A stretch of DNA of 64,000 bases from Selaginella moellendorffii (Eukaryota > Plantae > Lycopodiophyta): assembly GCF_000143415.4 (NCBI RefSeq), contig NW_003314287.1:1385514-1449513 (forward strand). Reading direction: 5' to 3'. Below the pieces are notes generated by a model, which had not been told where the DNA came from, searched no databases, and was given only the letters and a program-made list of their open reading frames with translations. How positions within the stretch are numbered: the stretch's first letter is position 1; each line of letters opens with the position of its first letter. The position numbers and the translations under genes are program-made. Below, piece by piece: positions 36,087-64,000 of the stretch.

Positions 36087-36306
36087 ATGGTTGAGATGTA
36101 TATTTTATTAATTGCTTGCCTGTTATGGCTAGTAGCCGATGCCACCACAAATTCTACTGCTGGGAGGGTCGTGTTTACTACGCTCTCTCATGTTTTGTGG
36201 TGAATTTGTAGCTCTTCACCGGAAGTGTGGTCCAACTTTTTACCCCTGTTTACCTTTCAGTAGCATATGTTGCTCATTTTGTACTTTGCTTTTTTGTGCT
36301 TGGTGA
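36087..36306 (+). CDS. Knottin (ICK, conotoxin-like) precursor gene; splice donor reads GG instead of GT
   Basis: TATA at ~36057. Exon 1 MVEMYILLIACLLWLVADATTNSTA is a signal peptide. Acceptor TTGTAG at 36211, then exon 2 LHRKCGPTFYPCLPFSSICCSFCTLLFCAW*. Confidence 0.7.
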
Positions 36307-40679: not shown

Positions 40680-42288
40680 TTATATAGTTACCATAACCAG
40701 GGAGCCTATATTAGATTCGCACTCTCTCAGAATCATCTTTTCTTCTTTGGTTTTATATCCTGAAAACAAAAGAGATGAAAGATTAGAAGCCATAGGAATG
40801 GACTCATAAGATCATGACTAGCCTGATCGAAGATTGCTGTGGGAATTGCGATGGTAGCCACAGCATTTGGAAAGTCGACGATGCTCGAGATCCTGCTCTC
40901 GCAAGGGCAGCATGACAGAAGGAGGTAGATCTGGCAGTCGAGAACGAAGGAAGAAAGTTGAGCTTAAAACCAGTGTGGAGCTGTTACTTGCCTGCTCTCT
41001 TGTGTATCCAAACTTCGAGAGGTACTCGATGGCATTGAGGACTGCTCGCTTGAAAGACAAGGTCGTGTCGAGGTAGTGCTGTCGTCCGTGTTCATCCACG
41101 CTGATTCCTTCGAAAACCAGCCAGTCGGAGAAACGAGGCTCGATAGGCCCGATCTCGAAGAATGGTTGCGCGTGTAGATTCGTTGGGCTCATGTAGTCTT
41201 TCATTCCACCACGCAAAATCTCGCATCTTTTGTAAACAAGCAAAGAACTTTAAGCTCGTCTCTAAGATCAAGCGCGGAATGGTACCTTAACGTGAGAAAT
41301 CCGTTCATCTCGATCCCTCCACAGAAAGCAATCTCGCCGTCACCCTGGGAGAAGTGCATGTCTCCCATGCTGAGATTAGCACCCTCCACGAACACGGGGA
41401 AGTAGACTTTGCATCCCCTGGAGAGGTTTTTAATGTCGAGGTTTCCACCGTTTTCTCGGCCGGGGACTGTTCTTGCGGCTTCGGAGGCAATTCTTTCCCA
41501 ATCCGGGCTGCCTTCTTCGATCTGTGACGAAGTTTTCATCGACAAAAAATCAATGAAATAGAGGACAAAAGTGTGGTACCGTGCCAAGTAGAACATTTCG
41601 TTTTGTTGGAAGTGCTGCTACTAGTGGTGAAGAAGAAGTGTCGACCAGAGCTTTCTCTCGAGCGTTCCAAGCTTCCAAAAGTTCTTTAGATGGAGCTGTG
41701 CCAATTAGTCCAGGATGTACCATTCCTGGGAAACGAACGCCTGCAAAAGAAAAAGAAGGATGAGAGAATAGAAGAATTCATCGTTCTTGCCTGGGATGTG
41801 TCTCGACGATGCAAAGATCCCTTCGAAATCCCAGATCGCCTTGGTCGCATTTGGAAAGCGATCGCTTAGAAATCCAAACCCAGGTAAGATCGCAGTGAAG
41901 CCCCATTCCTGCCCAGAAATCGGCCCCAGATCGCATATCTCCACCATCAAGATGTCGCCGGGCATCGCTGGAGCGCCCGATTCATCCACAACGCGCACAG
42001 GACCGCTCAGATAGTGCCCCTAGCATCCATCCAATCCAAGAAAGAATGCGAAATATGAGCTAGTCTTACCCCTGATAGATCCAGAGCCTCTATATCCGCC
42101 ACAGAATCGTCGTTGCGGATCGCTCCACCCGCGCAATCCATCATCTCCACAGTGAAGATCTCGTTCTCCTGGACCTCGGCAATGTGAGGGATGTCCGGAT
42201 GCCAGCGATTGTGGAGCGGGGGCTGCTGCTCGTGCGCCTTCCTGGAGAAATCAACATCGCAAACGCGGCGTGGAGTTCTCGGCGCCAT
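40680..42288 (-). CDS. Formamidase (FmdA/AmdA family), multi-exon
   Basis: PLHNRWHPDIP, HYLSGP, WGFTAI, PGRENGGNLDIKNLSRG, GDMHFSQGDGE, CCPCESRISSIVDFPNA. Confidence 0.95.
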
Positions 42289-42387
42289 AGCGATAGCTCT
42301 CAATTCAAAACAAGAGAAAAAAGATACAGGATATTCTATAGAACCCTAGAGAAATATTCTCTTCTCGGGGAAATTAGGGTTCTTCGC

Positions 42388-42681
42388 TCAGAAGCAGCAA
42401 TCGCAATCGAATGGGCAGAGCGCGGTGCCACCGGCGTCCTTCTTGTTGCACCCCAGCTCCTCTTCGGTGTAGACACTGAATCCCTCCTGCGTTTTCTTCC
42501 TCTTTTCTTCCTGATTCTTCGCGGCATTCTTCTTCTTCTTCTTTACCCTTTTCCTGGCCTTGGGCTGCTGTTCTTGCTCAACCGCTGGCTTCTTCCTCTT
42601 CTTGGCGCTCGATTTCTCTGCGAAAATGGCGTCGATCTCGTTCTCCGCCTTCGCGGTGGAAGCCGCTCTCTTCTCCTCCAT
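42388..42681 (-). CDS. DUF1764 small basic protein, 97 aa, intronless
   Basis: NEIDAIF...KKRK, KTQEGFSVYTEEELG...GGTALCPFDCDCCF. Confidence 0.9.
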   Translation of the reverse strand: MEEKRAASTAKAENEIDAIFAEKSSAKKRKKPAVEQEQQPKARKRVKKKKKNAAKNQEEKRKKTQEGFSVYTEEELGCNKKDAGGTALCPFDCDCCF

Positions 42682-42742
42682 AGAAGCCCTAATCTAAACC
42701 CCTAACCCCACGAAAATATCTATCCTTTCTAGGGCTCCGCCA

Positions 42743-45700
42743 ATGCTGGCCGCTACGAGTGGCGAGGAGCCCGGGCTCCTCGCGACCAAGAGCTGGATGC
42801 TACATTCTGGAGTGCTTGATAGGAGCTGGAGGATTTCTCCTCCTCCTCGAAGGCTCTCCTGTCGCTGCTATTTCAATCCCAACGCTACCAGGAATGTGGC
42901 ATTCCAATCGCGAGGTATGGTATTTCTTCTTTCGCTCTTTTTCTTCGGAAGTGTGCATTCCTGGTTTCCATCGGATTTTCTTTTGTTTCCATCAGATTTT
43001 CTTTCTTTGTGAACAAAGGATGTTCGGTTTTTATCTTGCTTTTCTTGGTAGTCGTGTTTATCATGCCAAAGAGGAGGAATTCTTAGACTTCTGTGATTTT
43101 CTTTGCTTGTGATGCTGATGTAGAGCTTCCTTTGGCAGATTCACAACAAAGCCGATATGGTATTCTAGAAGGAGCCGGGCACAGCAAAGACGACGCGGTC
43201 CAGCGAACAATGCGAAAGTTTTACGAGGGAAGGAATGGACCGCCTCTTCGCATTCTTCCGATTGGAGGCCTCGGAGAGATTGGAATGAACTGCATGCTCG
43301 TCGGGCACTATGATCGCTATATCATGATCGATGCTGGACTTATGTTTCCCGAGTAAGCAGTCTCGACACCTTTTGTTACTCCTGTTTCTGCTTGTTGAAT
43401 GCGTTTGGTGCTTTACTTACAGGCATGCTGTCTTCCTGCAAGCAGTTATGAGGATTTCGGGGTGGTGAAAGTTCTTCCCGACACGACGTTCATTTCTCGC
43501 TGGAAGCACAAGATTGAAGCTGTGATTATTACGCATGGGCACGAGGATCACATCGGTGCATTGCCTTGGGTAATATAACCATTTGGTTTGCTGTTTCTCT
43601 TTCTATTTCCTTTTCTTTTGGTTGCTGACTTGTTACATCTCAGGTTATTCCCGCTCTTGATCCTCAGACACGCATTTACTCTACAAGTTTCACACTCGAG
43701 GTGAGCAACTAACACGTTACTACTGCAAAGCTTCAGTCTTGCACATTTGATGTGTAGCTTATCAAAAGGAGATTGAAAGACTACAACTTCCCATTTGAGC
43801 ATCGATGCCATACATTTACGATGCGAAATCCCTTTCAAGCGGGTCCTTTCAAGGCCGAAGCTATTCGTGTGACTCACTCGATACCGGATTGTTGTGGCTT
43901 GATACTTCGTTGTCAAGATGGAACCATCTTTCATTCCGGAGACTGGAAGGTCTGTTCTGGCTGTCTTGATCACACTTCACTAAAGGATTGTTTCTATTCG
44001 CAGATCGATGAAAATCCGCTTGATGGTAAGATATTTGATCGGAATACACTTGAGGAACTAGGCAAGGAAGGAGTCACTCTGGTAATTGCTGAGTTGAAAT
44101 TTTGGCAGCATTTATGAAATGTATGTCCAGATGATGAGCGACTCTACGAACGTCTTGTCGCCAGGGCGGACAATAAGCGAGACAGATGTTCGAAAGTCGT
44201 TGATGCAGTATGTCACGGAGGCAAAATCTCGGGTTATATCAACACAATTTGCTTCCAACATTCATCGACTTGGGAGTATGAAAGCTGCTGCAGATGCTTC
44301 TGGACGTAAACTAGTGAGTTATAATTAGCTGTTGTTTTTTGTTTCTAGAACTTAACATTACACAGGTTTTCATTGGAACTGCCTTAAAAACGTATATTGA
44401 TGCAGCATGGAAGGATGGACAGGCACCATTTGATCCTTCGATTCTGGTAAGGGTGCATCTGTGTAAAATCTAATTTGGTTGTGTGGCTGTTTACCAGGTA
44501 AAAGCTGAAGATATGGGCGCGTATTCACCAAAAGATCTTCTTATAGTCACGACAGGATCTCAGGTTCGCTTAATATGTTATAGATTCTAAGTTTGAAGGA
44601 CTGTTTGCAGGGCGAGACACGGTCGGCTCTAAATCTTGCATCATTTGGAAGCAGCCGCAGTTTAAAGTTGTCCAAAGATGACGTTATCCTGTATTCGGCA
44701 AAGGTATGTTCGTGAGCTTAAACTTCTGTAATTGTTACATGAACGTTTTGCAGATGATACCTGGCAATGAAACGAGAGTGATGAAGATGCTGAACAGGAT
44801 ATCTGAAACTGGTCCGCATATCATCACTGGAAAAGACAAGCTTCTACATACTTCCGGACATGCCTATCGCGATGAATTGGTACGCACTAATCACTTTAAA
44901 GTGGATTTTTAAAGGTCGGATTGTGCATGACAGCAAGAACTGCTAAGACTCATTCGGCCGCAGCATTTTCTGCCGGTCCATGGTGAGTATACTTTCTTAA
45001 AAGAGCACGAGCAGCTTGGCAGGGCTTCCGGTATTCAGCACACAAAAGTATGTTATAACCTTACTTTTGAAGCTCTCTGCTAAGATTTAAGCTGGCAGGT
45101 TATAAGAAATGGTGAGATGCTCGGAGTCTCGCCTTTACGGAACAGACGGGTCCTCTCTAGTGGGTTTGCTGCCCTTGGAAAGGAGGATTTACAGGTAAGA
45201 GGGATTCTCACCTCGATTCATGCTCACGTCTCAAATTTTGTGAAACAGCTGATGTATAATGATGGGGAAAAAGCATTTGGAACTGCATCAGATCTTCGCG
45301 TGGACGAAAGAAAACACATAGCCTTCGATGGAATTATAATAGTAAGGTACGAAGTTTGTTGTCCTTGAGCTGTCGAACCTTGTTGACTCGTTTGTTTTAG
45401 TATTGAGGTGATACGTGATGCCCTTCTTGAAGACGATGATAATTATGCATCTCGGCTAGATGGTTCGGAATATGGACTACGCGCTCGTATCAGGATCACC
45501 ACTCGGTGTCTTTGGCTGGATCAGGGAAAACTTACGGAAGCACTTCACAGGGCAGCTAATGCAGCCGTTGGAAGCTGCAAGCAAGATGCTGATCTTCAGA
45601 CTGTGGAGCGAACAGTTGCCACAGTGCTCCGGAAGGTAGCACAAAAGTACAACAACAAAAGGCCAGAGGTCGTCGCTATAGCTACAGAGAGAGCCGTTGC

Positions 45701-46589
45701 TCCAAAAGACAAGCTCATCCAGAAGAGGCTGGTCGTGGATGCTGCGGCTCAACTTAAGGTGCTGGTGAGGACAAATGCTGTAAATACCAGAGTCTACGAG
45801 AAAGAGAAGAGGCAGCAGCAGCACGCGGAAAAGGACAACGAGCGACGGCTGTCGGTGCTCACACCAGAATTTAACAAGTTCATGGGTATAGAATCTGTTT
45901 TTAACTTGCTTAGTTTTCTGATGCTGTCCGGATTCTGCAGAGAAAATTGATAAAACTGAAGACGCCGAACCCGTCATCAAACTTCCGAAGGTGGAGGAAA
46001 CAGAAACAGAAGAAGAACGAGTGAGAAAGGCAATCGCTGAGAAGGTGTTGAGAGAAATGAAAAACGCGAGGACCCAAAAGGCGGCTAGGATAGAAGAAGA
46101 GAAGAAGCTACAGCTCGTAGTAACAGTTGACGATGCTGATAAAACACCAGCACCAGCACCAGCACCAGCCACCAAAGTGGAAGAAAGAAAACAAGAGAAG
46201 AACGAAGTACTTTCCATAGCCGAGAAGGAAGCAGACTTGGCAGCCGCAGGGAAAAGCAGATGGAAACCGGAGGCCACCCAGGTGTTGATCCGGCTACGAA
46301 CAGGCATGGACGACAAATTCAGAGAAGCTAAACTCAAGACCCCTCTCTGGAAGGAGATAGCATCCAAGCTTGCTGAGCATGGCTACGAGCACACCCACGG
46401 CCAATGCAAGGCAATGTGGTCGACTCTGGTGAAACGCTACAGGGTACGTTTCTAATGTTCCATTTTCTTTCGAGTAGGCTAAGCTTGTGAGAATTGCAGA
46501 ACATAATCGAGGATGATGGAAGCTCCAACAAAAACTGGCCATTCTTCGATGGAATGCACGCGTATCTGAGCGATGATCCAGACTCGTAA
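42743..46589 (+). CDS. RNJ: Chloroplast ribonuclease J with C-terminal GT-1 trihelix domain, multi-exon
   Basis: Transit peptide; [43 protein letters not shown]; C-terminal [11 protein letters not shown]...LWKEIA...QCKAMWSTL. Confidence 0.96.
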
Positions 46590-46971
46590 ATTACAAAGCT
46601 TGAGGTGAATGGATGTGTCGCTCAAATATTTACATATTTATCTATATATAAGAAGTAGAGGCTCGCAGCCATCCGATCGCAAGCCCGCATCATGGTCATG
46701 GATGCTAAATGGGAGATTGGTGGTACAGGAACTATTGATATCAAAATCATACTGTTTTCATTGCAAGTCATGGTCGAGCTTAACCGAGAAGATTATGATT
46801 GCTGGAAATGATTGGAGGAGGGCAAACGACCCACAGCGTCACCACTGCCTTGGCCTCGAGATCACCCATCGTGCTTGAGATGATCCGCTAAGATCGAGGT
46901 GAGTCAATCTAGACAATCTATCTTTCGAGTTTGTCTTCGCAATAAAAAAGATGGGACGACACAGCAAGACT

Positions 46972-48639
46972 TTAGTAGCTTTCAAGCTCCGCCTGTATGG
47001 CCCGCTTCTCCTCTTCGTCGGTTTCAGAGTAATCGTACTCGTCCCAGCCCCTCTCTTCTTCCAGCTTCTTGTTGCACTCCTCGGCCTTCTTGAGAAACTC
47101 CTCGTAGTCCTCCTCGGACTCTCCCTCGGACATTTTCTCCTGCAGGTCCGAGAAGAGGTCCCCTACGGTGTGCGCGTTTCCATCCACCAGCGTCAGGAAG
47201 CCGTGGATGATGTTCACTTCTCGCTGTGCCAGCCGTGCCCTGTGAAAGATCCGTTTGAGGTGTTGTTGCAGACGGTGGCGCGTCGTGAACTCGGGCTTTG
47301 ACACCAACGACGCAGCAACGTTGCAGTTCTTCACCACTGATCTCCATCGCCTTAGTAGCAAATCTACCTCACGAAGAGGAGCAGTCCCTGTTTGATGTTT
47401 ACACCAGGAAAAAGAATCGCAACTAAGAAAGTTTGATGGGAAATAAGTACCTGGCGGTGGAAGAAACTCATTGTACTCGGGCCCCGGCTCCTTGTGTACA
47501 CGACGAAGCCTCTCGTATGAACTAAACATTTTTGAGAGAGCAAGCGCCACGGCGTGACTCACATCTGCGAAAAGAAAGAACAAACTTTTCTCTAGTTACA
47601 AAACGAAGTTTCTGTCTGATTCTTACTTAGCGACCCCTCCCATTTGGTAGTTGGGATGCGGCAAGTGTGAGTGCAATATAACAGCTCCTCGTTTGTCAAG
47701 CCGTCGTCCTCCCGTCCAAAGACTAGCTGCAGGGAAGAGCCATGTCAAAACACTGTATGAAAGTTCTAGTGTATACCGCAATGGCTTGACCCTTTGCTGG
47801 AATGCAGAGCTTAGGATACGGCACTTCGTTTACAACTCTGTCACGTCCGTCACGCCGGGTGAAGCCGATGGCCTACACGAAACCAAGTTCGTTCCTGGTG
47901 GGTCATTAGAAATGGAGAAGAAGAAAACAACACACTGGAGCACTCGACTCACCATAAGGCATTCGCCAACAGCCTCTGGGATAGTCTTGACAACGTTGAC
48001 ATCTTCCAGCAGGGACTTCGCGACAGGATTGACAGCCATTTGACGAGCTTCGTCCGAGAAGTAATCACACTCTGGACTCACCTGGCCAAAGAAAACGAAA
48101 ACCATGAAGAAAAATCTCAAGTCTAGCAGCAGCGAACACACGTACCAGCCATACTTGTCTACACTCTGTTAGAGACCAAAGTGAGAAGAGAACAGAAGAA
48201 AAAATAAAAAATTCTTTTTGCAAGCTCTCTCACCGAAATTCGAAGCAATGCGGCACACCGATCCCACATTCCCAGCTGACTGTGATCCAACGAGCACAAC
48301 CCTCACTCGATCGAGAGCTCCGAGCCCAGTGAGCCAATGCACGTCCTCCGTCTTGACTTGATCCTCCAATTCCTCCTGGGGATACGCCAAATGCCGCCAT
48401 CGCCCGTGCTCCTTCGTGTTCCTATAGAACGGCTTCCTGTTCTCGTCCTTGTACCACACCAGCCGCGGATCACGAAGGCTGTACTTCTCCTGGATTCCAA
48501 TGAGACCTGGTGCGCCCTTGGCGATGGATTCGCGCTTGAGCGCCTGGCGCGCGGCTCTGGCGCCCTGCGACCGCCGCTGCTTCAATCGCACGTAGGAGAC
48601 GAGGCGACGGGCGGATAGCGAGGCGGGCGAGATCGCCAT
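46972..48639 (-). CDS. SpoU/TrmH-family (TrmJ/LasT-like) tRNA/rRNA methyltransferase, organellar-type, multi-exon
   Basis: RVRVVLVGSQSAGNVGSVCRIASNF; VSHAVALALS; IFHRARLAQREVNIIHGFL. Confidence 0.85.
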
Positions 48640-48764
48640 CGCCAAAACCCTAAGCCCTGAACCCCCATTCTATCTTTCGAAAAATTACCATATCTCTCGC
48701 CCAGTGGATGAGCCCTAAAGCCGCCGTCTAGGGTTCTTCGCGAGAAAGGAGTTGTGGGGGCGCC

Positions 48765-49576
<812 letters not shown>

Positions 49577-49886
49577 GCGAGTCGCGAAAGAAAAATCACA
49601 CCAGGAACAGGCAAGAACACCGTCGGTCAGTGTAAACTATGAGCTTGGTTCTGTGCTCTACGTATTCTCTTTTCCAGGGAGTTTCATTCAATTCCAAAGC
49701 GAAATCTTTTTATTCCATGTCTCCAAAGTTTCTTCTTTTTGTCTCCTTGATCTCTCGCGAGAAGAAAGTTTCCAGCGATTGAAAGGAAGAAATAACTGAT
49801 TTTTCCTCTTCACTTGTAGTCCCCCTTGGCGCCCCTAGCACGAAAAAATGGAAGATCTGTCAGCTATGAAGTTTGGAGGATTTTTC

Positions 49887-50153
49887 TTACAAGAATTCAC
49901 GCCGCGGTCGTCCGGCTTTCACATCCTGCGCGTGCTGCTCAAAGGAGATCAATCATGCTCTCGAGATTTCTCTTGGGCGACTTACAAATTCACTGACGAT
50001 GAAACGATAGGCGAGAAAGGGGACGATCAGCCCCCAAATCACAGCCGTCTTGGTGGTCTGCTTGTTAAACCGGAAGTGCTCCGCCTGGTTCTCCCTCATG
50101 TAGAGCCACTCCTCGAGGTGCTTGTTGGGCTTGAACTCCATCCCGCCCACCAT
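49887..50153 (-). CDS. NDUFB4: Complex I subunit B15 (NDUFB4)-like, 2 exons
   Basis: MVGGMEFKPNKHLEEWLYMREN..HFRF...WGLIVPFLAY...EF|HAQDVKAGRPRREFL*. Confidence 0.85.
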
Positions 50154-50233
50154 CGCTCTAGCTCTAGATCTAAAACAAGTTTTAGGGTTCTTGAGAAAGA
50201 CGAAGAGAAAAGAATTTAGGGTTCTTGAGAACG

Positions 50234-50911
50234 CTATCCTCCCATTTGTAACTTAAGCTCGGGATCGTTGCTAAATCCCGCGACAGCGCCAGAGGCGGAT
50301 GCCCGGAACTTAAACACAATCGCGCCAGTTCCCTTCTTGCAATTCTTCGCTGGCGCTACGATCTTCTCAATCGGCCCAAACAATCCCAGAGCCTCGCGGA
50401 GCTTGGCCTCGTCGTATCCGGCGCTGCAATTCCAGCTCGCGCACACTGTTCTCTCGCAGGCCTCGCCGCTCACGCCGCTGGCGACCTTGATCCGGGCGAG
50501 CTCATCGAGAGAGATCGCGGCGGCCTTGGCCACGGACGAGGATGCCCCCGATGGTTTGCTAGTGGGCTTCTTGATGACGAGATTGAGGCCCGAGACCTGG
50601 GATTTCTTCTTCTTGCGCTTGGGCGGGGGTTGGATCTGCGGGCCTTTGAGGATGCTGGAATACAACTCACAGTCATAGCGCTCGCGCTTGCTGTCGTCAC
50701 AGAGTACCTTATAGGCGTCCTGGAGGGCCTGGAAATCCCTAGCCGCGGTCGCCTGATCGTCCAGGCGCTTGTCCGGGTGGCAGCGCAGCGATTGCGCCCG
50801 GTAGGCGCTGCGGATCTGTGCCGAGGATGCGTAGGCGCCGCCGTCCAAGCCTCCCTGGAGACCTAGAACCGTGTAGAGATCCTTGCGCTCTTGCTGCCCC
50901 CCTTTCTTCAT
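50234..50911 (-). CDS. DnaJ protein with degenerate C-terminal RRM (DNAJC17/Cwf23-like)
   Basis: DLYTVLGL...IRSAYR...HPDK...FQALQDAYKVL; C-terminal LREALGLFGPIEKI RRM-like region. Confidence 0.85.
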   Translation of the reverse strand: MKKGGQQERKDLYTVLGLQGGLDGGAYASSAQIRSAYRAQSLRCHPDKRLDDQATAARDFQALQDAYKVLCDDSKRERYDCELYSSILKGPQIQPPPKRKKKKSQVSGLNLVIKKPTSKPSGASSSVAKAAAISLDELARIKVASGVSGEACERTVCASWNCSAGYDEAKLREALGLFGPIEKIVAPAKNCKKGTGAIVFKFRASASGAVAGFSNDPELKLQMGG

Positions 50912-51028
50912 CTTTCCCGAGAGCCCAGCCCTAATTGTGTGATTCGTCGAGTATATTCTATATTTAATCCAACGGCTGGTAGATTTTATATGAAGAGAAA
51001 TGGAAAATCAAAGTAAAGAACGTTCGAA

Positions 51029-51100
51029 TGTGGCTGCTGGGATTCGAGCCCAGGTCTCCACGGCCACAACGTGGAATTCTCACCACTAAACTACAGCCAC
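51029..51100 (-). tRNA. trnH-GUG: tRNA-His (GUG)
   Basis: GTGGCTGTAGTTTAGTGGTGAGAATTCCACGTTGTGGCCGTGGAGACCTGGGCTCGAATCCCAGCAGCCACA folds as a cloverleaf with anticodon GTG. Confidence 0.95.
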
Positions 51101-51244
51101 ATGAACCTTGACCAGTGGTCAAAAGTCGTTGCCTCTTTTTGACCATTTGGTTGACCGTAATATTCTCATTAAATTAGCCCTTCAATTTACTTTAAACCTT
51201 TAAAAACATTTTTTATTTAATCTTTCACAAATTTATATTTCTAC

Positions 51245-51775
51245 CTATCTAATGAAGGAGGAACTGGCTTCGTCCGAGCATGGCGGTGGCTCCTGGAAGG
51301 ACTGGGCGGAGAGGCGGCTGTACGTGAGCCCAATCTCAAGGTAGACAAACCCAGTCTCTGGATCATCGACATGGAGCCCTTTCACGGCCAGCCACACGAG
51401 CAATTCCCTCGCCTGGACGCCCGAGAGATCCTCGATCCTGCTGGACCTCACCTTTCCCTTGATCTCCTCGCCATACCACAGCAGCTCCTCCTCGAGCTTC
51501 GCATAGCACGACCGGCTCAGCCGCATCTCGAACGATCCATCCTCCTCGTCCAGCGAGAAATCGGTCACCAGCGGCAGAGGGAACATCCCCTGGGGGAGAT
51601 TGTAGCTGTCGAGCATCTTCGAGACGCGGCGGGGGGCATCGCGATCGCCCTTTGATCGATCCGAACCGTGCTTACCATGACGAGCATCCTCGTGATCGTC
51701 CTGGCGGTAGCCACTGGCGGCAGCCAATCCAAAGAAGGCCGAGAACAAGAGGGCGATGGCAACCTTCCTAGACAT
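51245..51775 (-). CDS. DUF538 secreted protein, intact, intronless
   Basis: Signal peptide; LDSYNLPQGMFP, SCYAK, LSGVQARELLVWLAV, FQEPPPC. Confidence 0.9.
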   Translation of the reverse strand: MSRKVAIALLFSAFFGLAAASGYRQDDHEDARHGKHGSDRSKGDRDAPRRVSKMLDSYNLPQGMFPLPLVTDFSLDEEDGSFEMRLSRSCYAKLEEELLWYGEEIKGKVRSSRIEDLSGVQARELLVWLAVKGLHVDDPETGFVYLEIGLTYSRLSAQSFQEPPPCSDEASSSFIR

Positions 51776-52074
51776 TCTTGGATACAAATCGAGAAGAGAG
51801 AACGATCAAGAGAGACTGTGAGACGCTCACTTCTCGTCCCATCTTATATAGTTGCTCTGGGAGCGCCAGGTTGCATGCATGCCTCTCCTCTAACAGAAGA
51901 CTGGGATATACCCTTCGGAGACTCTGCTAGATTCGCGAAGATTTTTAACTAACGTCTTTTGGTTTGTCTCAAAATTCTATAGGAAATACAGAAACAAATA
52001 GGTGAGGCTTGATGCTTACAGCCAAACACCATTTGGAATTGGAAAAAAAAAATGTAATAGAAAAGCGCGATCCC

Positions 52075-52640
52075 TTCACTGGCAAGAGCTGGAGCTGTAG
52101 CGATGCTCGCTTACCCGCGATTTGCCCCGCATTATCAGCCACGTCATCACCCCCTACGAGGATAACACCATGCTGCTTCGGCGCGCTTGTATAATTCCGC
52201 CACCTCTTAAATATTGAAGAGAAATGCGTGAGCTTGGGAATGTAGTCCCCATCCCTGGTTGGGAATCCACGACTTGGATATTCTTAAGAAAAGTAGGAAC
52301 CAAATAAAAACGCGACGTGTTTTTTCTATTTTGCCTTGTTCTTCACCGTTTTGTTCCATCCCCCCCATTTCATCATGCAGTGCCAAAGGTTGTAGCTGCC
52401 AAGCCCCCAATGGTCGGCTCCTCCTCGTCATTCTGATATCGCCAGACCATGGCCATCTTTTCCTCCCTATTATTTCTCGTTAAGCAAAGCCAATCACGCT
52501 CAATCTGCAACCTTGAGAAGCAAGCAGCTCATAAAAAAAAACGATTTAACAATTTGATGAGAATTTTCACCAAAAAGAACAACAAAGATTAAATTACTCT
52601 GGAATGCAACTCACCAAGCACAAGTGAACAAGGTGCAAAA
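52075..52640. repeat. Dispersed repeat unit, also at ~61240-61725 and ~62050-62705 (partly inverted)
   Basis: GCAAGAGCTGGAG..GATTTGCCCC.CATTATCAGCCAC..CCCCTACGAGGAT at 52082 and 61250; AAATATTGAAGAGAAATGCG at 52209 and 62170; CAATCTGC..AGCAAGCAGCTC in all three. Confidence 0.85.
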
Positions 52641-52690
52641 TTTGCAACATCCTTTAGTGAAAGGTAAACACGGAAAAAAGGCTCCATAAG
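52611..52690 (-). pseudogene. 5'-truncated knottin copy (..YGAFFPCLPFTKGCCKFCTLFTCAW*)
   Basis: Reverse complement aligns with 36226-36306. The first Cys and signal exon are missing where the AT-rich island begins. Confidence 0.8.
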
Positions 52691-54099
52691 CTTTTAATTA
52701 ACATCAAGCTAGATAGGTATAATTTCTTTCTTTCTTGCTTCAATTGTAATCTGTTATAAACCTTGCCTCAAAGGACCTGTTATAAGCTTTGGCTTAAAAG
52801 GAAGTGGTTCTTGATGCTCCTTGTTTTTCATTAGCAATTAGCATATCATCTTTTACTTCCCTTAATCTGTCGTACAATTCATGGGGATTCCATACTGACA
52901 TCACTTTGGCCAAGATTATGTTAAGGCTCTATTCCTGAAAGTAAAATTGACATTTTTAGTTTTTTATCTGGAAATCTAAATGGTGTGTTGACTGAATGAT
53001 GCATTTTCTTTAAACAAATATCTATCACATCAGCAAAGCTTATATGAAATATTTTAACTTGTTTTATATATGTATGTATTTACTATTTTAGATTTTGTAC
53101 CACTCAATATTGCCATAGCAAATTAAGTGGTGTGTTGACTGAATAATGTATTTTCCTTTAAAAAGTATATACTTGGTTTAGATATGTATGTATGTGCTAT
53201 TTTTAGATTTTGTACTGCTCACTATTGCAAAGCTAAGTAATATGTTGACAGAATTATGTATTTTCTGAAAACAATATGTGACATTAGCAAAACTTCTGTA
53301 TATCGCTGAAATTCTTCCTCATTACTAGCATTCTCAATATTTGGTTCAATTTATCCTTTAGGATGAAATTATTTAACCTTTTTTACATTCCTAAGTTAAG
53401 GAGTATATTTGGTCAATTGTTATGCATTGTTTTACCATCTAGATCTTTACATTCTTGAGGGGCCTCAATGCATACTCTTTTCGCTCCCAAACACTTTGGT
53501 TTGACCAATATTCTTCACCTTCTTTCTCAACATTTAGTGAGGGAGTGTACCAAGACTAGTCATTAAACTTTGTAGCAAGCATGTAAAGTGTTTTAGGGTA
53601 TAAAGTCTTCAGCTTGTTATAAGAAATTAAATTTGAACTAAATTTTGTTTACAAGGATGTTTAGTCCATGTTTTTGTGAATGGAAGTTAAGTGCTGTAAC
53701 TCTCTTAGGAACTCTATTCTCTTGACACCCTACCTTTTTTGAGCTCAACTAAACCACTAAATGTCAATATAAATATATAGTGTGATTCTTTTATCTAACA
53801 AATAGAGTCGGACATAATACATTTCTAATATGAATTATGAACGGTTAAATTTAAACTTTTTAACCAAGTATTAATTAAACCAAAGACACTTAACCATAAT
53901 AACCCATTGGAAAAAGAAAGTGCACTTTATTCATGGATTCTCCTTCCATATTTGAACCGCTATAGATTATATCTCAAATTGTTCTCTTCAATTCCCTACA
54001 TTTATAAGCACAAAATAGTGATATAGAAATGTCATTGAATTTTTAACATTGAATTAAAGGAATATATAAAGAAATAAATAATTTTAGTACATATAAGAT

Positions 54100-55380
54100 A
54101 AAATATAACACTATCTATCTTACAAATTTCAATTTATTTTAAATTTAAATTATATTTCTCATAATTCACTCCTAAAGGCCATTAAAATCTGTATTTAAAC
54201 AATAAATATTATTGATTTTTTTTAAATTCATATAAAATATATTTAGTAATACATTTTTCTCATAAAGTTATAGCAATTAGATATGGCATACATTTATCTG
54301 TATTTAAACAATAAATATTATTGATTTTTTTTAAATTCATATAAAATATATAAAGTAATACATTTTTCTCATAAAGTTATAGCAATTAGATATGGCATAC
54401 ATCCTTAGTGTCGTAACACAATATTTATATTTTAATTCTCTTTTATCAAATTTGAAATTTGATCCTCTTTATATGTGCACTATATTTTCATACAAATGGT
54501 AAGACTTACATAATATAATATATGTACAACAATATAAAAGTCATAATAAAATTATATAATAATTTATGTTTATAATATTTTGCATTTTTCTAGAGGATTT
54601 CCTAATAAAATTTATTTTAGTTTAGAATACCCAAAAGATTTAACTGACAAAGGCATTTTACTTTTTAATACTATATAAACCCAAATGCTTAACTCCAAAA
54701 CCCTTAAGCACTTATCCTCAAAATTTAATTCAGCAAACCAAAAAGTATTATGTCCATAAGATATAGACCACATAAGTTCATACTTTTTTATAATTTCGAG
54801 ATCTAATTAAATTTTTTGATGTTGTTCTAAACATAATATGCGGACATCAAGTTATTACAATTTATTATATGTGTACCTTGAATAAGTACATATGATATGG
54901 CCAACATTGTAAAGGATAATTAATACTAATATTAGAAATATTATTATGGGCCATCTCTTGAGATATCTGAATTTAAGAGTTGATCTAACATAATTTTAAG
55001 ATAAATACAAGAATTGATAAGTGTTCATTACCAAGTATTATATAAGAATATTAATTAAATGTAATTTTTAAAATTTCACGAAAATTCATTCTGACATATA
55101 ATTATTAAAAAGTAGTATAAAAGTTACTTCTCTTCTAGCAAAACTTTGATGATTTTATTTCAATTACAAATTTATGAACATGATTCATAATAATACTAAA
55201 GGAAAATCAGATTATAATTAAACATATCAATGGTTGTTGTATGCAAGATACAGTAAATTATTTTCATTTTCAATTTTAGATATGATGGTCATTTACTTAT
55301 AGTAGATGATAAAAACAAATACTATTGAAACAATAGTATTTTTAATCAAAATAGTTTAATTTATTGGATTAAGAATTTTT
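54100..55380 (+). pseudogene. Decayed paralog of the 56081 lectin-domain ORF
   Basis: TATATTTTCATACAAATGGTAAGACTTACA (54481) vs TATATTTTCTTACAAATGCTAAGGGTTACA (56405); GATGGTCATTTACTTATAGTAGAT at both 55284 and 56846. Contains a ~109-bp tandem duplication at 54188-54402. Confidence 0.8.
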
Positions 55381-56080
55381 TTTAATATTTAGTTCTAAAT
55401 ATCTCTTTTTATTCCATATTTTGGATGTCTCCATATTCTAGTTGTATTCCATATTGATTTGTTCTTATTTTCCTAGTTATATCTTACCTATAATTTTTTT
55501 TTATAATATTTTATATTAAATTTTAAATTTCTTTCAGAAACGTATAGTTAGAATATATATTTATCATGCTTTAATACAATTAGTGGTTAAATATTATTTA
55601 TTCATTGCCTAAATCTTATGCTGATTGATATAATAAAAATAATATTTTTGAGGATCTAACATGAAATGTCTTACTCTCATAGTGTCACTAGGAATATTAA
55701 ATTGATTATCCTTTTATTATAGTTGTTTGGAGTCCTTGCTTAGCACCAATATGGAGTAGGTTTCTCTTTCTTACATATTACTAAAGCTATATAGCATTAA
55801 TTATATCTATGAAATTCTTAAAAGTGAAAAAATAAAGATTTTTTAATTTAAAATATCAAATACTAAAGTATATAAAATACAAAGAAAAATTGATTTTAGA
55901 CAATATCATAGATGATAAAAAAAAGTACTAAATTTAAATTCAAAAGCATAAAATTCGATAACTTTATAGAAAAGGTGATGTTTAAACAGAAGTTTCAAAG
56001 TTGATAAAAGCTATATAATAAAAGTTTTTATAAATCTATAAAATAAATTCCCTTATAAATTCAACTAGCTACCTAATAAA

Positions 56081-57013
56081 ATGCTTTATAAATTTCTATG
56101 GTTAATGTTAATTAGTTTCAATTGTTATGCTCAACCTCCTGAAACAAGATGGTATGGGGATATTGGTCATTTTAGTAACAGAGATATACTTAGGATTTTA
56201 AATTCTATAGAACAATTAATTCAATCAATTAATAGTACAGATCAGATAATAGTTCATAATCATGGACTTGTAATATATCAAGTAATTCATGTTGCTTATC
56301 AAAATGTAGTACTAAGACTTTCTATACATCCTGCTGGTATAAGAAATTATATTAATTGCAATCCACTTCCATCTAATTTTCCATTTAATCCTTTATATGT
56401 TCGATATATTTTCTTACAAATGCTAAGGGTTACAGAATATTATGCTTGTACAACTGCACCAAGAATGATAATAACAGTATATAGATATTTTGCTCTAGAA
56501 TATTTTGGTTTAGGAGTTCCTGCAAGAAGTCCTAATGAGATTTATCCAACAATAGACTATCCTAAAGATTTACCTGATGAAAGCAGTTCACTAACTAATA
56601 TTTATACTATAATTGATAAAGATATATCACAATGTTGGCCATATCGTACACAATTGATAAATGGACCTTTAAAATTTCTTGGTACACATATAATAAATGG
56701 TAATAGTTTGATATCTGCAAATAACAAGTTTAGAGCAATTTTAAAAAATTGTAATTTAAAAGTGAAAAATATAGAAAACTATAAAACTATATGGTCTACA
56801 ATGTCCTATCGTGATAATACTTTTTGTTATCTCCACCTTCAAGTTGATGGTCATTTACTTATAGTAGATTATAAAAATAATATTATATGGAAAAATAACA
56901 TATTTTATAAAAATTATATTATTTATGCAGTTTTAAAAATTGAAGATATAGGATATTTAACAGTAACTTCTCAATTTAATGGATCTAAAAAACTAATATG
57001 GATAAATAAATAA
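56081..57013 (+). CDS. Secreted 310-aa protein: unknown N-terminal domain + C-terminal bulb-type (GNA/B) lectin domain, intronless, AT-rich
   Basis: Signal peptide MLYKFLWLMLISFNCYA; B-lectin pattern GNSLISANNKF..NCNL..TIWST..LHLQVDGHLLIVD..IIW..LKIEDIGYL..IW; TATA-like TTATAAAT at ~56053. Confidence 0.75.
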   Translation: MLYKFLWLMLISFNCYAQPPETRWYGDIGHFSNRDILRILNSIEQLIQSINSTDQIIVHNHGLVIYQVIHVAYQNVVLRLSIHPAGIRNYINCNPLPSNFPFNPLYVRYIFLQMLRVTEYYACTTAPRMIITVYRYFALEYFGLGVPARSPNEIYPTIDYPKDLPDESSSLTNIYTIIDKDISQCWPYRTQLINGPLKFLGTHIINGNSLISANNKFRAILKNCNLKVKNIENYKTIWSTMSYRDNTFCYLHLQVDGHLLIVDYKNNIIWKNNIFYKNYIIYAVLKIEDIGYLTVTSQFNGSKKLIWINK

Positions 57014-60000
57014 AATAGAATCTATTTTCTATTTCTAAACTTTAAAACTAAATAAGCCCATTTTTGGTCATGTCTTACTTTTTGCTTTAATCACCTTTGA
57101 ATTTTATATCAAATTAGGTGATGTGATATAATTAATAACTAATCAATTCTAATTAGGGGAATATTCATTTTTATTAAATAATATCTACCAAAGAAATACT
57201 AAGAATGAATTGAGCTACTAAAGCTAATAAAAATTAAGTCTTTGATGATGTTTTATTGTGATAAAAAAGTGTACTTTACCCATATCTATAAGAGATACAT
57301 GTATATTTAAAATATAAGAAAACATGCTGGCTGCTTTTGAGATTTTCATCAGCTGTGATAGAGCACATCTAGATAATGTAAAGAAAAATAACTTAAAAAA
57401 CCATAAGAATCACAAAAAAAAATTTAAAAATTAATCCGATGAGTCATTACATCTCAAGCTATTAAAGACAATGTGAAAGAATAAATAAAGAGAAAAAACT
57501 TATCTTGATTTCTCATAATGGAATCACCATGCCTCCAATCTACTTTATGGATTTCATATCCTACCTAAAGAGTGCTCTGTGAAATCTAGTAGCTTCATCC
57601 TAAAACTTAAATTGCAGTTATCTTAATCAAATACTATCAGACAAGAATAAAACAATATTTGTGTTGATAGAAAATGAAAACTGTAATCAGAAGCAAATCT
57701 AACTATGAATGTGAAGTTTTATCGGAGTTTATAATATATATCCTAGTTTGTAGAAATATGAATTTCTTTGAGATTTTAAAAGTTAAATGTAAATATAATG
57801 TAGCATACTATAGTCAACAAAAAGATAGTCCATGGAGAACTTCATAGTTATAGCTTTTGCTTATAATAAATATAATGTTTCAAATTGCCACTTGTTATAG
57901 ACCAATTAAATTGATATAACATTTGATGTTTATGATCATAAAAATTTCACACATAAAGCTCTTTTAAATAGAAATTTCTCCATTTTGAAAAGGATTTGAT
58001 ATCTAAAATTCTACTTCAAGAGGTCTCTAAAGCAATGTATATATATCAGGGTATATCCATTTGAAAATCCTCAATAGAGCACTTAATATGATTTTCTATT
58101 CTATATACATAGCTATTCTTAAAAGAGAAATAAATAACCTGAGAGTCCACTTGTTAGAAAGATAGTTTCAACTTGAGCTTTGAGATATTTCACAACTACC
58201 TCTTCACTAGAACATCTAGATCATAAACTATTGCAAAAGTAGGAAGTTAAGCAAACAAAAGGAATTGTGCTTGTTAAGCTTATGAGCAAGACAATTCCAT
58301 GTTTATAGTCCCTTTTTGTCCATACTCCCTCAATATGCAGCCAAAATTTAGGAATGTAATGATGGTGAAATTACTTGTTTAGATATTGAAATCTTGTATG
58401 ACTTTTATCAAAATATGGTTCAGAAGTTATTCTAAATTAAGTTAATTTAAAGTTTAGACAAATGAACATTCTTAAGATCAATATCAAAGAGAAAAGAAAG
58501 ATTCATATAGAGGAAGAGAATAGCTAAAAGAATGTTTAGATGGTTCAAAAACCTTATTGCTAACAAAGTTACCATATCTATTGCAAAAAAGATACCTTAT
58601 AGCAATCATCACCTTTTAACACTAGCCATGGAGAAGAAAATGGTAGCTTCTCCCAAATTAGCTACCATAAAGGCTTCTTCTTTCCTTGTGAGTGCACTAA
58701 AGCAACTATCACTTGTAAGCTCCCTACCCTGAAGGGGATAATTTAAAATTGAGATGCCCAGCATAAGTCAATGCAAGTCAACATAGTCAATTATAAGTCT
58801 TTAAAAGGAAATTTAAGTTGAAAAAATGAAGCTTTTAAAAATAATTAGTATACATTGAGTCACATAGAAGTTCATGAAAATGTGTCATTTTTAAAATTAT
58901 ATTATTTTACAATTCATTAAAAGAGCTTAAATATGAATCAACAAAAACAAGCTGAAATATTTTAACAACTAGTGTATGTTAGTTAAATAAATATATATTT
59001 ATATATTATTCCTTTATTTGAAAGAGTTCTCTAGAGTTCTTGAGAAGATGGAATTCTTTCAAATGAAGAGATAGTAAGAAAAAAAGAAAAAAAAAACAAT
59101 AGTACAAAGAAATGTGAAAATATAAATTTTATTTCATTACTACAATCTATTTTTTGTATCTTTTTTATAAATACACAAAAATCTAGAATTCTAAAAGCTC
59201 TTTTCTTTAAAAGTAGGCTAAAATTATAAAATCCCATATCAAATATTAACAATTAAAAAATTATGTATTATCAGTGTTATAATAATTTTCTGTGCATTGC
59301 ATATAGTAACACTTGGTTTGCTTACTAATATGTTATTCCTATTTATTATTCCAACTAATCAAAAAACATGTTTGTTATTTATAAACACAAGATTAATCTT
59401 ATTAAATATCAACCATTAGATGGTAAAATAAACTAGAATATACTAGGAAGTACTTAGGAAAGTTTATAAAATAAAAACATATTTATAAATTATAAATACA
59501 AGATTAATCTCAATGAATAACAACTGTTGGATAGTAGAATATCCAAGCATATTCTCCACTTCCTCAAACCAATAAATAAACTATATTCTTAAAACTAAAA
59601 TTTAATATATAAATTGCTAAGAAAAGTTATAGTTGTTAGTTGTTATAATATTTTTGTTGCCCTTAAGCTCCTTGAAAATTTGAAAAGTTTAGTAGAAGAA
59701 CGGCTTAAAAATAAATCACTACTATTTATATTTACACCCCACCCCCACCCCCTAACATCTTATATCAATCTCTATCTCCGTCTCTAAATTTTATCAAATA
59801 TTTTACCTTCACCTCAATATAACAATCCTGTCTTTACTAGGGACATTAGTGAAGTCGAATTAAAACTCTCCATATATGAATTTTTTTACATTGTTATTAG
59901 AGTAAGTGGAGTCCCACATGTTTTTCCAAGATCTTACTCTTGATATAATGGGATTATTTGAAAGTACATAATGCTATTATATTCAATGTTTAATATGGTT

Positions 60001-62681
60001 TTTTCTTTAGCAAGATAAGTGTCTCCATGGGTCTATAAACTTTCTTTGAGCATTGTAACAACTGCCCAACAATAAATTTCAAAAATATACACATATGGAT
60101 GTATAATAGACATATAGCCACTATCACTTTATAGTGAGGAACAACATCCTTTTACAAAACATTGTATTAATTAATGTTAAATACAGGATTTTTATGTCAT
60201 TATATAGTGGAATGTAAAATCTAGAACTGTTTTATTATTCTATAATATTATCCTTTAAGGAAATGAAAATATATATATATAATAAAATGATATTAGTTGT
60301 AGATAGCATAACTAAACAACCCCAATTGGATGTATAAACTTATAACATGTATAACAAAAGTTAGTTTTAAGTTATTTTGTGTATCATGGATTCTGTTTGA
60401 AAATATAATATGTTTTATGAAATTTCAAAACTTTTTTTTCTAGGTTATGATATGAACTTACTCCTGCAAAAACACATATGATAGGCTTTGTGTGAGGTAT
60501 ATATTTCCTTTTGATATGATAGTTCTATTAACATTATGCCCAACATTGTAGATAAGTAAATCCATAACACATTTCTTGGGTATTGATTTTAAACTCCACT
60601 GCTGATGCAAGTATTGCTTGAGGCTTTTTATAAGCATTTAAATTTTCTATTCTATTTTAATCATTCAACTATATTTTTTACCATTTAGAGGAATTTCACA
60701 ACTTTAATCTCAACATGTTCTGTGATTCCTTTAGCTAACTAATAAATTCAAATCTGAAACTTTTCTAATACCAAATATAAATTTTTGAATTTAAACTTCT
60801 ACTTTAGCCACTGTAATATGGCTCACCTTTTAAGAATTTTCCTTTCACAAGCCTACTGATACAATAAAAGGTAGAGACTTTCCACCAAATCTAAAACTTA
60901 CTCATCTTTATCTCCATTATCACTACAATTGCATAGTTGCCTTTTGGTCTAGTGTAGGTGGTTTCCTTCCTAAAGAGCTTTAACTCCAAAGTGCAATATA
61001 TCTTCCATACCTTTAGAACTTTCACAAATATTGTCCAAGTACATTTTCCATCCTTTCACCCCTTGCAATAAGAGTGCAAATTAGTGCCTCAAGCATATTG
61101 AAGATACCAACACTTGCAATCAAACAGCAAAGGTGGTAAGTGTACATACATGATAAAATGACCAAGTCGAGTACAGAAGATGCCATAAAACTACTCAATC
61201 TCCAAGTTGTGATAATTGGCCAAAAAACTATGAGTGATTCCTTCACAAGCAAGAGCTGGAGTTGTAATGCTGCCCAATCACCTGCCTGGCGTGATTTGCC
61301 CCACATTATCAGCCACCCCCTACGAGGATATCACCATGCCGACTCCCACCTTGAAGCGGGCACACTCATAGAAAGTACGATCTTGCCGCCCTTAAAAGCA
61401 TGAGCTTGGGCAGTGTACCTGGGCTTTCCTTGTTCAAAGCAGAGCAGGCTAGAATCTCTTGTTTCAAAAATTTCCTCTCTTTACAAGAGATGCTAGCCTG
61501 CTCTGCTTTGAACAAGCCCAGGTAAACAAAGAAGCTACAGTCATGAAACAAAGAAAGGGAAATGTTGTTTTGTTCCTGTCTAATTCTTTCTTGTAAAGTC
61601 AATCAGGCTACTGATCTGCAATCTGCAGCAAGCACCGAGCAAGCAGCTCTCTGCTGGCAGAAAACCTCAGAGAGTTGCAAAGAGATTTGAGTGGTCACAT
61701 TAAGAGAATTTCACCCAAAAAGAATTAGATTACGGTTCACCAGCTCCTCCCTTGTGTTGGCTACACAATCAATGGATTCCCTCTTCAAACAAATATAAGA
61801 AATCTTTCGATACCTCCTCACCTCTGGATTTGTCTTGGCTATCTTTGCGTCTTTCTCCTGGCATGATGAATTGGCCGAATGTATGCCAAACCTAGGCGAA
61901 AGATCTCAATCAGCAATTAGGATGTATTTACACGACTTGTAGTTGTCAACATTGATCGGTGCCACCTTTGCTTGGATCATCTCGGATCAAATATGCTCTT
62001 ACCGCAACACTGCTAGGATAATCTAAGATTGGTCTAATCCTTTCACCAGTAAGAGTTGGACTGATAATGTGGGGCAAATTTCAGGCGGGCGACCGAGCAC
62101 CACTACAGCTCACATCATCACCCCTGCTCCCACCTTGTGCTCTCAACAAAAACAATTTCGCACCTCTAAAATATTGAAGAGAAATGCGCAAAAGTCTTCT
62201 TTGTAGGAACCAAACAAACTTCAATAACTCCGTCAGTTTTTCTGACCGTATTCATGATCATGTCCTCTACTGTTTCACTCATCTCCATTCATGTTCATGT
62301 GAAGTCTAGCTCAATCCTGGCCATTCCATATCAATGTCATGCTGTACCAGGAAGGCAGACCATACGCCATGGCTGTGAAAATCATCCTCAAAACGAAAAC
62401 GGCAGTCGAAACAAGAGTCTAATTAAGCCTTAGAGAAAGGGGAATGTTGTCTTTCTTTCTTTCTTGTTATACAATCGCACTACTGATCTGCAATCTGCCG
62501 CAAGAACCGAGCAAGCAGCTCTCAGCTGGCCGGAAACCTCACAGAATCGCAAAGAGGAGTGCTCGCGTTATAGTTCTCTCAAAATAAACAGCAAAAGTGC
62601 ACAAGATGAAGATGACTGTTTCTCGTACGTAATTACGAGGAGAAAGAAAGAAAAGAAAAAAGAGTACTCTTGGAATATTAA

Positions 62682-62870
62682 TCAGGAAGCACAAGTGAAC
62701 AAGGCGGCGATTGCCGGTGTACACCTGGAAATAGGCTGGGCCACATTGCCGGGTACACCTGGAAATAAGGAGTTGAATGGGTGTAGCTTACCAGCAATAT
62801 AACCTGATCTACCGCAATCAACCACTAGCCACAGCAGGCTAGCAATTAGTAAGAAATACATGCTCCTCAT
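62682..62870 (-). pseudogene. Third knottin-family copy with intact signal exon and GT donor but the cysteine core deleted
   Basis: MRSMYFLLIASLLWLVVDCGRSGYIAG|gtaagc...ccag|VHRQ, then directly LFTCAS*. TATA box at ~62902-62910. Confidence 0.75.
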
Positions 62871-63024
62871 CTCAACCACACCTTGGGTGAATTGTTCAAT
62901 GTTTTATATAGAAGCCGAGTCATAGAGAAAGCTGTTGCCGTTTTAGTATATCCAGAGAATCTTTTGGCTTGATGCCAAAATGAATATGCCAGCCATACAA
63001 AGTGTGCACCATACTAGAGTTTTG

Positions 63025-64000
63025 CTAGCTTTTGTTTATGTTCTCGAGAGCTTTTGCCTCTCTAAGAACTTCCAGCGCTTCCTGCTGCCTTCCAGCTCGC
63101 TTGAGCTCCACAGCACGGACTTTTAGCTTTCGCACTCGATCTTGCAGCTCTTGCGATGGCGAGGAGCTGCTTTGCTTCTGTTGCTGCTGTTGCTGCTGAG
63201 GAGATCGAGAGGACGGCAGCTTCATCTCCTCATCCTGCCAGCCAAGACCTGAGAGAGCTGCCAGAAGCTGTGGATCCAAAAGATCTTCCACTCCGTCCAT
63301 AGCGCTCGCTTGCAAACCCGGAACTCGAGATGGAGGGTCCATCTCTTCCAGCTGCTTCTCCAGAGCCTTTGCTTTCTCAAACTCGGCCTCGGCCTCGTCC
63401 ATCTTGCCTTCTTTCCTCAGTGCCAAGGCTCTTCTTTTGTGAGCAAGAGATTCTTGCTGTATCTTCATCCTGTCCTTCGAGCGAGGTGCCTGACCTGTGG
63501 CTGGAGGAGAGATCCGGCTGCTATCTTTCGGTGGTGCTGCTCCACTTGGACGTGGAACTGGAACCTCCTCCACAGCCACTGCTTGCCTGTGGTTCTCCAA
63601 AAGTTTGGCTTGTCGGAGCTCCTCCTTGGCAGCAGCTACATTTCCAGATCTCTTGAACTGTAAAGCTCGTCTTTTGTGCTCCAGAATCTCCTGCTCGATG
63701 CTCGATGAAGGCACGTTCAAGTTCAAGTTCGTGCTTGGCACTGGAGGCTGTACTGCTGCTAGAACTGCCGGGGGCTCTATAGTCTTCTTCTCGGGAACTG
63801 ATGGTACGAATATATCGCCAGTGAGGAGGTCTTGGTGTTGGTTCACGGGAGCGACTGGCGGTGTGTGTGTAGCTCTCGAGAATAACGGAGGAACAATGTC
63901 TACCAGAAGGCCGATTTCTCCGTATTCGCCTTCGAAAGAACTCTCTCTCCGTGTTGCTTCTTCTTTCTTATCGTTCGCTTTTGTAGATACGTCCTCTTTG
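63025..64000 (-). CDS. 3' part of a FYVE4-like / DM14-repeat endosomal protein (continues beyond window)
   Basis: Repeated HKRRALxxKRxG..AxEELxxAKxLE helical motifs; VEDLLDPQLLAAL. Confidence 0.75.
   Translation of the reverse strand, partial: KEDVSTKANDKKEEATRRESSFEGEYGEIGLLVDIVPPLFSRATHTPPVAPVNQHQDLLTGDIFVPSVPEKKTIEPPAVLAAVQPPVPSTNLNLNVPSSSIEQEILEHKRRALQFKRSGNVAAAKEELRQAKLLENHRQAVAVEEVPVPRPSGAAPPKDSSRISPPATGQAPRSKDRMKIQQESLAHKRRALALRKEGKMDEAEAEFEKAKALEKQLEEMDPPSRVPGLQASAMDGVEDLLDPQLLAALSGLGWQDEEMKLPSSRSPQQQQQQQKQSSSSPSQELQDRVRKLKVRAVELKRAGRQQEALEVLREAKALENINKS

Follow-up and report, generated by a model that had tools for sequence, protein, structure and literature searches.

A 64,000-nt stretch of the Selaginella moellendorffii genome (the window; assembly GCA_000143415.2, scaffold GL377591.1) raises the question of how part of a small cysteine-rich peptide gene, here called copy B, came to lie at the low-coordinate end of an AT-rich island. 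The initial annotation described it as the second copy of a knottin, cut by the island, and ascribed its destruction to the insertion of the island or to an associated deletion. Our analysis leads to a somewhat different answer. With a probability of about 78%, copy B is a non-functional, 5′-truncated relic of a two-exon gene for a secreted Cys-rich peptide, and the family to which it belongs is decaying; the loss of its 5′ part would pre-date the split between the two haplotypes of the plant.

The core of copy B (minus strand, 52679-52611) translates to FFPCLPFTKGCCKFCTLFTCAW followed by a stop, and the core of copy A (plus strand, 36238-36306) to FYPCLPFSSICCSFCTLLFCAW followed by a stop; these are the only two full cores in the window. 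The previously described alignment of copy B to the copy at 36 kb is real, with 53 of 69 nucleotides identical. All five Cys, the Trp and the stop are retained, and the 16 differences cluster in three loops (SSI/TKG, S/K, LF/FT), so that the claim of a conserved Cys pattern and stop with variable loops holds, and extends to the Trp. In 20,000 simulations with 16 random substitutions each, all five Cys survived in 2% of trials, and the five Cys, the Trp and the stop survived, with no new stop, in 0.12%; the A/B pattern therefore exceeds chance. The Cys frame also gives the highest amino-acid identity, 16/23 versus 12/22 in each other frame. The DNA homology between the two copies extends ~60 nt beyond the stop, indicating a duplicated piece of DNA rather than convergence. 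The dN/dS check proposed alongside these claims returned 0.40, below 1 but not significantly so, from only five synonymous and 11 non-synonymous changes. Since the changes are few and are spread over the codon positions as 4, 6 and 6, without an excess at third positions, the ratio alone decides nothing.

Copy C was found by searching the signal-peptide exon of copy A, which is ATG-initiated and hydrophobic (MVEMYILLIACLLWLVAD..), against the window (Table 1). The signal-peptide exons of A and C are 72% identical over 18 amino acids (tblastn E 7e-5; DNA E 8e-6). A hydrophobic N-terminal exon and the position of a phase-1 donor are common to both copies and to their alleles in the other haplotype (A-alt and C-alt), hydrophobicity being the basis for the signal-peptide call. 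The donor sequence GCTG/GTAAG occurs at the same place in A-alt, C and C-alt, and in A, C and the other-haplotype alleles exon 2 opens with (L/V)HR(K/Q)CGP.. in the Cys frame after the acceptor. The plan of the family comprises a signal-peptide-like exon, a short phase-1 intron (33-67 nt in the family), and an exon with C-x6-C-x6-CC-x2-C-x4-C that ends in A-W-stop; the full six-Cys spacing comes from copy A, in its window allele, copy C being without Cys II-V. A signal-peptide-like exon stands in frame with the Cys-rich exon in A, A-alt, C and C-alt, and not in B. Together, the A/B comparison and the joining of a signal-peptide exon in exactly the Cys frame, in copy C and in the second haplotype, argue that the Cys frame is the coding frame and that the family was formerly kept in it by selection. 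The initial annotation had likewise taken it to be the selected frame. The gene plan of A and C backs this frame more strongly than the comparison of A with B.

In the shared 3′ segment, identity is 80% between B and A, 79% between B and C, and 67% between A and C. The three copies are old paralogues, ~20-33% diverged, of a local, unannotated and probably lineage-restricted family; the NCBI annotation calls no gene at A, B or C in either haplotype. The sequence examined for family members comprised ~110 kb across the two haplotypes, and intact members may exist beyond it.

Table 1. Positions of the three copies and of neighbouring features. Positions are those of the window unless a stretch of the second haplotype (L004) is named.
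Feature	Position	Strand	Remarks
Copy A (window allele)	36087..36306	+	signal-peptide exon from ATG 36087; six-Cys exon to stop 36304-36306; unannotated
DUF538 and DnaJ proteins	51.2-50.2 kb		encoded here
DUF538 gene	51245..51775	-	first gene common to the other haplotype past breakpoint 52512
Copy B 3′ flank	52548..52610	-	homologous to 3′ flanks of A and C, ~71-80% identity
Copy B	52611..52697	-	open Cys-frame stretch LKAYGAFFPCLPFTKGCCKFCTLFTCAW and stop 52613-52611
Copy B upstream edge	52698..52712	-	TAA, TGA; possible exon-2 acceptor relic (TCTAG/CT)
Low-GC block	52513..60887	.	8.4 kb, only in window haplotype; copy B at low-coordinate end; 114-nt and 109-nt tandem repeats, AT-rich core (15-30% GC), 310-aa lectin-like ORF
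Copy C	62870-62682; L004 4890-5088	-	unannotated; beside FYVE gene
Copy C signal-peptide exon	from ATG 62870	-	MRSMYFLLIASLLWLVVD..
Copy C phase-1 donor	62791	-	GTAAGC
Copy C CGPA motif	62745-62734	-	
Copy C end	stop 62684-62682	-	..LFTCAS-stop
Copy C downstream flank	61236..62704	-	colinear with, and old paralogue of, 52633-52069 (B 3′ end into DUF538 upstream)
Gene order common to GL377591.1 and GL377599.1			DUF538, DnaJ, NAC, SpoU, RNase J, DUF1764, FmdA, IFRD, hydrolase, KNOX

Copy B carries several lesions. On the minus strand, 52697-52611 read ..YGAFFPCLPFTKGCCKFCTLFTCAW and a stop, an open stretch of the form LKAYGAFFPC..CAW-stop with five Cys. Specifically, Tyr (TAT, 52688-52686) occupies the position of Cys I, and the interval from Cys I to Cys II is one codon short. 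An in-frame TAA (52700-52698) lies directly upstream, with a TGA two codons further. The open Cys-frame stretch contains no ATG, and no signal-peptide-like ORF is present on the same strand within 4.3 kb upstream. These features bear out the earlier statement that copy B is destroyed. Over 52690 to ~52712, homology to A and C is progressively lost. Copy B has the marks of an unprocessed pseudogene fragment, namely partial homology (~52712 to 52548), a disabled frame, and a genomic rather than poly-A flank. Given the lesions, and given that no 5′ half was found, we regard it as a piece of exon 2 that lacks a 5′ part and keeps its native 3′ flank. Alone, it would be unable to make a secreted peptide, being without promoter, start codon and signal peptide, having stops upstream and having lost Cys I. 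Judged from its sequence, copy B is dead, and taken by itself it is an ordinary pseudogene piece.

The other copies are damaged as well. In the window allele of copy A, the conserved phase-1 donor at 36163 is GG instead of GT; acceptors are located at 36211 and 36225, and only the cryptic pair of donor 36168 and acceptor 36225 would preserve the frame. The allele in the other haplotype (L005 16350-16566) has intact splice sites and a 1-nt deletion before Cys VI, which shifts the frame, so that reading continues for ~70 codons without CAW-stop. Identity between the two A alleles is locally ~86-91%, compared with ~97% in the flanks. All four substitutions in the mature exon (4/4) change the amino acid, and the signal-peptide exons differ by a 9-nt in-frame indel and by two 3′-end substitutions at the donor (GGG AGG versus GGT AAG). 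In copy C, the Cys II-V core is missing in both haplotypes and is replaced by a tandem duplication of a ~34-nt segment including the acceptor. Furthermore, a 1-nt indel between the two C alleles changes the frame. A and C lie 16 and 10 kb away and have each acquired lesions of their own, in one or both haplotypes, so the decay of the family can be explained without the island. The window allele of copy A may still work through the in-frame cryptic pair, and the family is perhaps not wholly extinct. A broader version of this idea, that a lycophyte-restricted, knottin-like family is still partly alive, with A expressed through the cryptic splice pair and B serving as an alternative last exon to C, strikes us as very unlikely.

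Scaffold GL377599.1 was reached through a near-identical DUF538 protein. As it shares the gene order of GL377591.1 at ~97% identity, we take it to be the second haplotype of the sequenced plant. Its identity to the window is 97% over 41242-52512, aligned to the opposite strand of the retrieved locus, and 95-98% over 60888-64000, aligned to the same strand; the FYVE/copy C and DUF538 blocks therefore lie in opposite relative orientation in the two scaffolds. The breakpoints fall at 52512/52513 and 60887/60888 in the window, and at 444/445 and 15888/15889 on L004. This difference could be a real structural variant, in which the FYVE-PPR block has been rearranged relative to DUF538 in an inversion-like manner, or an assembly error or mis-join. 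The low-GC block between the two window breakpoints is missing from both junctions of the other haplotype and, apart from copy B, has no match in the ~110 kb examined. Copy B itself is not found in the other haplotype. The initial annotation had suggested looking for an empty-site haplotype with a complete gene; an island-free haplotype does exist, but it is without copy B and rearranged, and is probably not an empty site. Two further observations concern this haplotype. At the place of copy B, a ferric-reductase-like fragment (FAD_binding_8/NAD_binding_6, 166 aa; L003 9536-9937, minus strand) abuts DUF538. In addition, a 2.5-kb GC-rich segment (50-67%; L004 1069-3621) is present there and is absent from the window at ~61413-61417.

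Base composition places copy B within the block. GC content drops from ~50% to 30-38% at ~52500, falls below 30% from ~53000, and below 20% (15-18%) from 54000. The edge of the block at 52512/52513, on which composition and haplotype comparison agree, is ~100 nt 3′ of the copy B stop, and copy B is therefore inside the block, in its first 200 bp, and is not cut at its margin. The description of the 5′ half as ending where the island starts did not hold up, since homology is lost at ~52690-52712, where GC content is 32-38%, and the edge of the block is on the 3′ side. The paralogy between copy B and copy C runs across this edge. Specifically, 52633-52069 starts in the last codons of B, takes in its 3′ flank and reaches into the shared upstream region of DUF538; it is colinear with the sequence after copy C (62704-61236). 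The two loci have in common an identical 12-mer (52530-52519 and 62521-62510), which falls narrowly within the block, and a flank element (52508-52432 and 62498-62418), which falls narrowly beyond its edge. With the paralogous unit spanning the breakpoint, it can be argued that copy B is native to this site and was lost from the second haplotype in the rearrangement. Within this old segmental duplication, 36 nt (62154-62188 and 52193-52228) are 92% identical.

The block has contents of its own. An intact, unannotated ORF of 310 aa (56081-57013, plus strand) lies inside the 20% GC island, and its C-terminus gives a weak match to B_lectin (GNA-type; E 3e-4), below the Pfam cutoff. Tandem repeats are found at 53057-53265 and 54187-54402. 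A pair of 93-nt direct repeats (53766-53858 and 60706-60798), 6.9 kb apart and 72% identical, might be decayed LTRs. The possibility that the island is a decayed duplicate of DUF538-DnaJ was rejected: tblastn returned no match at E <5, and the score in a purine/pyrimidine alphabet was below those of shuffles. Capture of copy B by a transposon was likewise rejected, as no terminal repeats bracket B, the ~110 kb contain no other copy of the block, and its ends, inspected by eye, show no obvious Helitron-type termini.

Copy B would descend from a gene of two exons that encoded a small, secreted, cysteine-rich peptide, and it keeps only the mature-peptide exon and the 3′ flank. The family would once have been under selection in the Cys frame and would now be decaying, every copy and allele examined carrying a lesion. 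For the 5′ loss we favour a rearrangement that pre-dates the separation of the haplotypes, in the form of a deletion or of a partial duplication starting from the intron/exon-2 border; the island may have been involved.

Between an island-tied deletion or insertion and a partial duplication, the balance is about equal. That a complete gene stood next to DUF538, and that the insertion of the AT-rich island or an accompanying deletion removed its signal-peptide exon and intron, is a tentative proposal on the doubtful side. The truncated 5′ end of copy B does face the AT-rich block, no exon 1 homology is left, and the colinearity of its flank with that of copy C suggests an old resident of the site. 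However, the block boundary is 3′ of copy B, and ~300 bp of 31-38% GC separate copy B from the core of <30% GC. No pre-insertion state is seen, as the island-free haplotype is rearranged and without copy B, and no 5′ half exists beyond the island, where the one match of blastn and tblastn is copy C, with a 3′ end of its own. The change of Cys I to Tyr and the lost codon are unrelated to the island, and A and C are damaged without any island. The part of the initial annotation that named the island as the cause is thus unsupported, although copy B is indeed destroyed: the boundary is on the wrong side, the other copies decayed too, and no remnant of exon 1 was detected. In the last respect, 52.7-61.3 kb contain nothing of exon 1 and the intron of A or C, even in a purine/pyrimidine alphabet, in which a 5′ half blurred by C>T decay would still be visible; local alignments in this alphabet scored below shuffles. 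The alternative, equally possible and equally doubtful in our judgement, is that copy B was born truncated, when a segmental duplication with its start at the intron/exon-2 border took along only exon 2 and the downstream flank. Homology begins approximately at the acceptor and takes in at least 620 bp of the flank that copy B has in common with C. In addition, the 75 nt immediately upstream of B (52777-52703) resemble a flank element found after both C (62508-62422) and B (52508-52432), a pattern that the joint of a tandem duplication would produce; the alignment scores 45, whereas the best of 200 shuffles reaches 41. This upstream match is, however, weak, with a BLAST E of only 0.015-0.04 although the search space was tiny, and consists partly of an (AAG)n run, and no upstream unit with exon 2 is present at 52780-53000.

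Two other explanations depart further from the relic reading. Copy B might be the last exon of a split gene, driven by the promoter of copy C and spliced from the C donor over ~10.1 kb, across the island, to an AG at 52692-52691; we consider this highly improbable, and equally so its product, a signal peptide joined to a five-Cys peptide ending in CAW. Phase and frame would fit, since exon 2 from 52690 reads A-YGAFFPC..CAW-stop without a further stop, and the AG is preceded, at a distance of 15-20 nt, by a TTGAT that resembles a branch point. Yet the family introns are far shorter, copy C has acceptors of its own and an exon-2 remnant directly after the donor, an odd number of Cys speaks against a folded knot, the other haplotype is entirely without B, and no protein of this kind occurs in public collections. 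Least credible of all is that the similarity is non-coding, reflecting a conserved non-coding element, an RNA gene or a transposon fragment in which the Cys pattern arose by chance. The absence of a dN/dS significantly below 1, the lack of extra change at third positions, and a +1 frame that is also open in both copies can be cited in its favour. Against it stand the joint survival of five Cys, Trp and stop (P ~0.001) and the signal-peptide exons in the right phase in A and C. The element has no Rfam matches, the only candidate, snoZ6 at E 0.98, being well below threshold and outside the element, and it folds no better than shuffles on either strand (z -0.95 to +0.44). A transposon fragment is further contradicted by a count of only three copies and by the absence of terminal repeats.

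The identity of the family as knottins is a separate matter. The label derives from Cys spacing only, a spacing that copy B does not have. In the inhibitor cystine knot (ICK) the knot is formed by disulfides I-IV, II-V and III-VI, and the general consensus spacing includes 6, 6, 0, 2, 4. The six-Cys framework C-C-CC-C-C, with loop lengths in the ICK range, is seen in the window allele of copy A only; copy B departs from it with five Cys, Tyr for Cys I and a first loop one codon short. Searches of A and B against Pfam-A gave no match at E up to 10, and PDB chains gave no sequence match at E up to 10. A word search with the 56-aa in-frame stretch returned nothing, and no protein of 31-98 aa shared words with the exon. 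A two-sequence HMMER profile run against 1.84 billion proteins (representatives) retrieved only two spurious repeat proteins with 'FIPCLP'/'YPCLP' motifs, in a search that misses relatives scoring below ~41 bits, so that only fairly close relatives are detectable; A and C were searched as single exons. An AlphaFold2 model of 31 residues, built from two sequences and hence with little power, reached a best pLDDT of 73, with 43-52 for the other four; this model found no match in the PDB with Foldseek, and no Z of 2 or more in a wide search with VIA-align. The parts of the literature available to our search mention no Selaginella knottin family.

The fragment exposes an unannotated, apparently orphan family of cysteine-rich peptides in an early vascular plant. 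Annotation systematically overlooks peptide families of this sort, which are candidate defence or signalling peptides. Birth-and-death decay is seen here in progress, with lesions that differ between the two haplotypes of a single individual. The fragment also marks a structural difference between haplotypes, inversion-like and with an 8.4-kb AT-rich block, that bears on the origin of AT-rich islands in Selaginella.

Among known systems, the plant knottins (pea albumin 1b/leginsulin and the Mirabilis Mj-AMP type) resemble the family in their small precursor with a signal peptide and in loops that vary while Cys are fixed, and copy A shares with them six Cys, an adjacent III-IV pair and the spacing 6, 6, 0, 2, 4. 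Unlike them, the family is without Pfam or PDB matches, its predicted models are inconsistent and match no fold, its mature peptide is very hydrophobic and uncharged, and copy B has only five Cys. Lineage-specific families of plant cysteine-rich peptides, which evolve by birth and death and are missed by annotation, also consist of short two-exon genes, absent from the annotation and locally clustered with pseudogenes, in which the signal peptide is conserved and the mature loops change fast; in contrast to these, the family here has no intact canonical copy in ~110 kb of two haplotypes and no relatives among 1.84 billion proteins. As for gene fragments and partial segmental duplicates at breakpoints, copy B differs in being truncated at its 5′ end while the mapped haplotype breakpoint lies on its 3′ side, but resembles them in keeping an exon and its 3′ flank, without 5′ exons, ~100 bp from a haplotype breakpoint.
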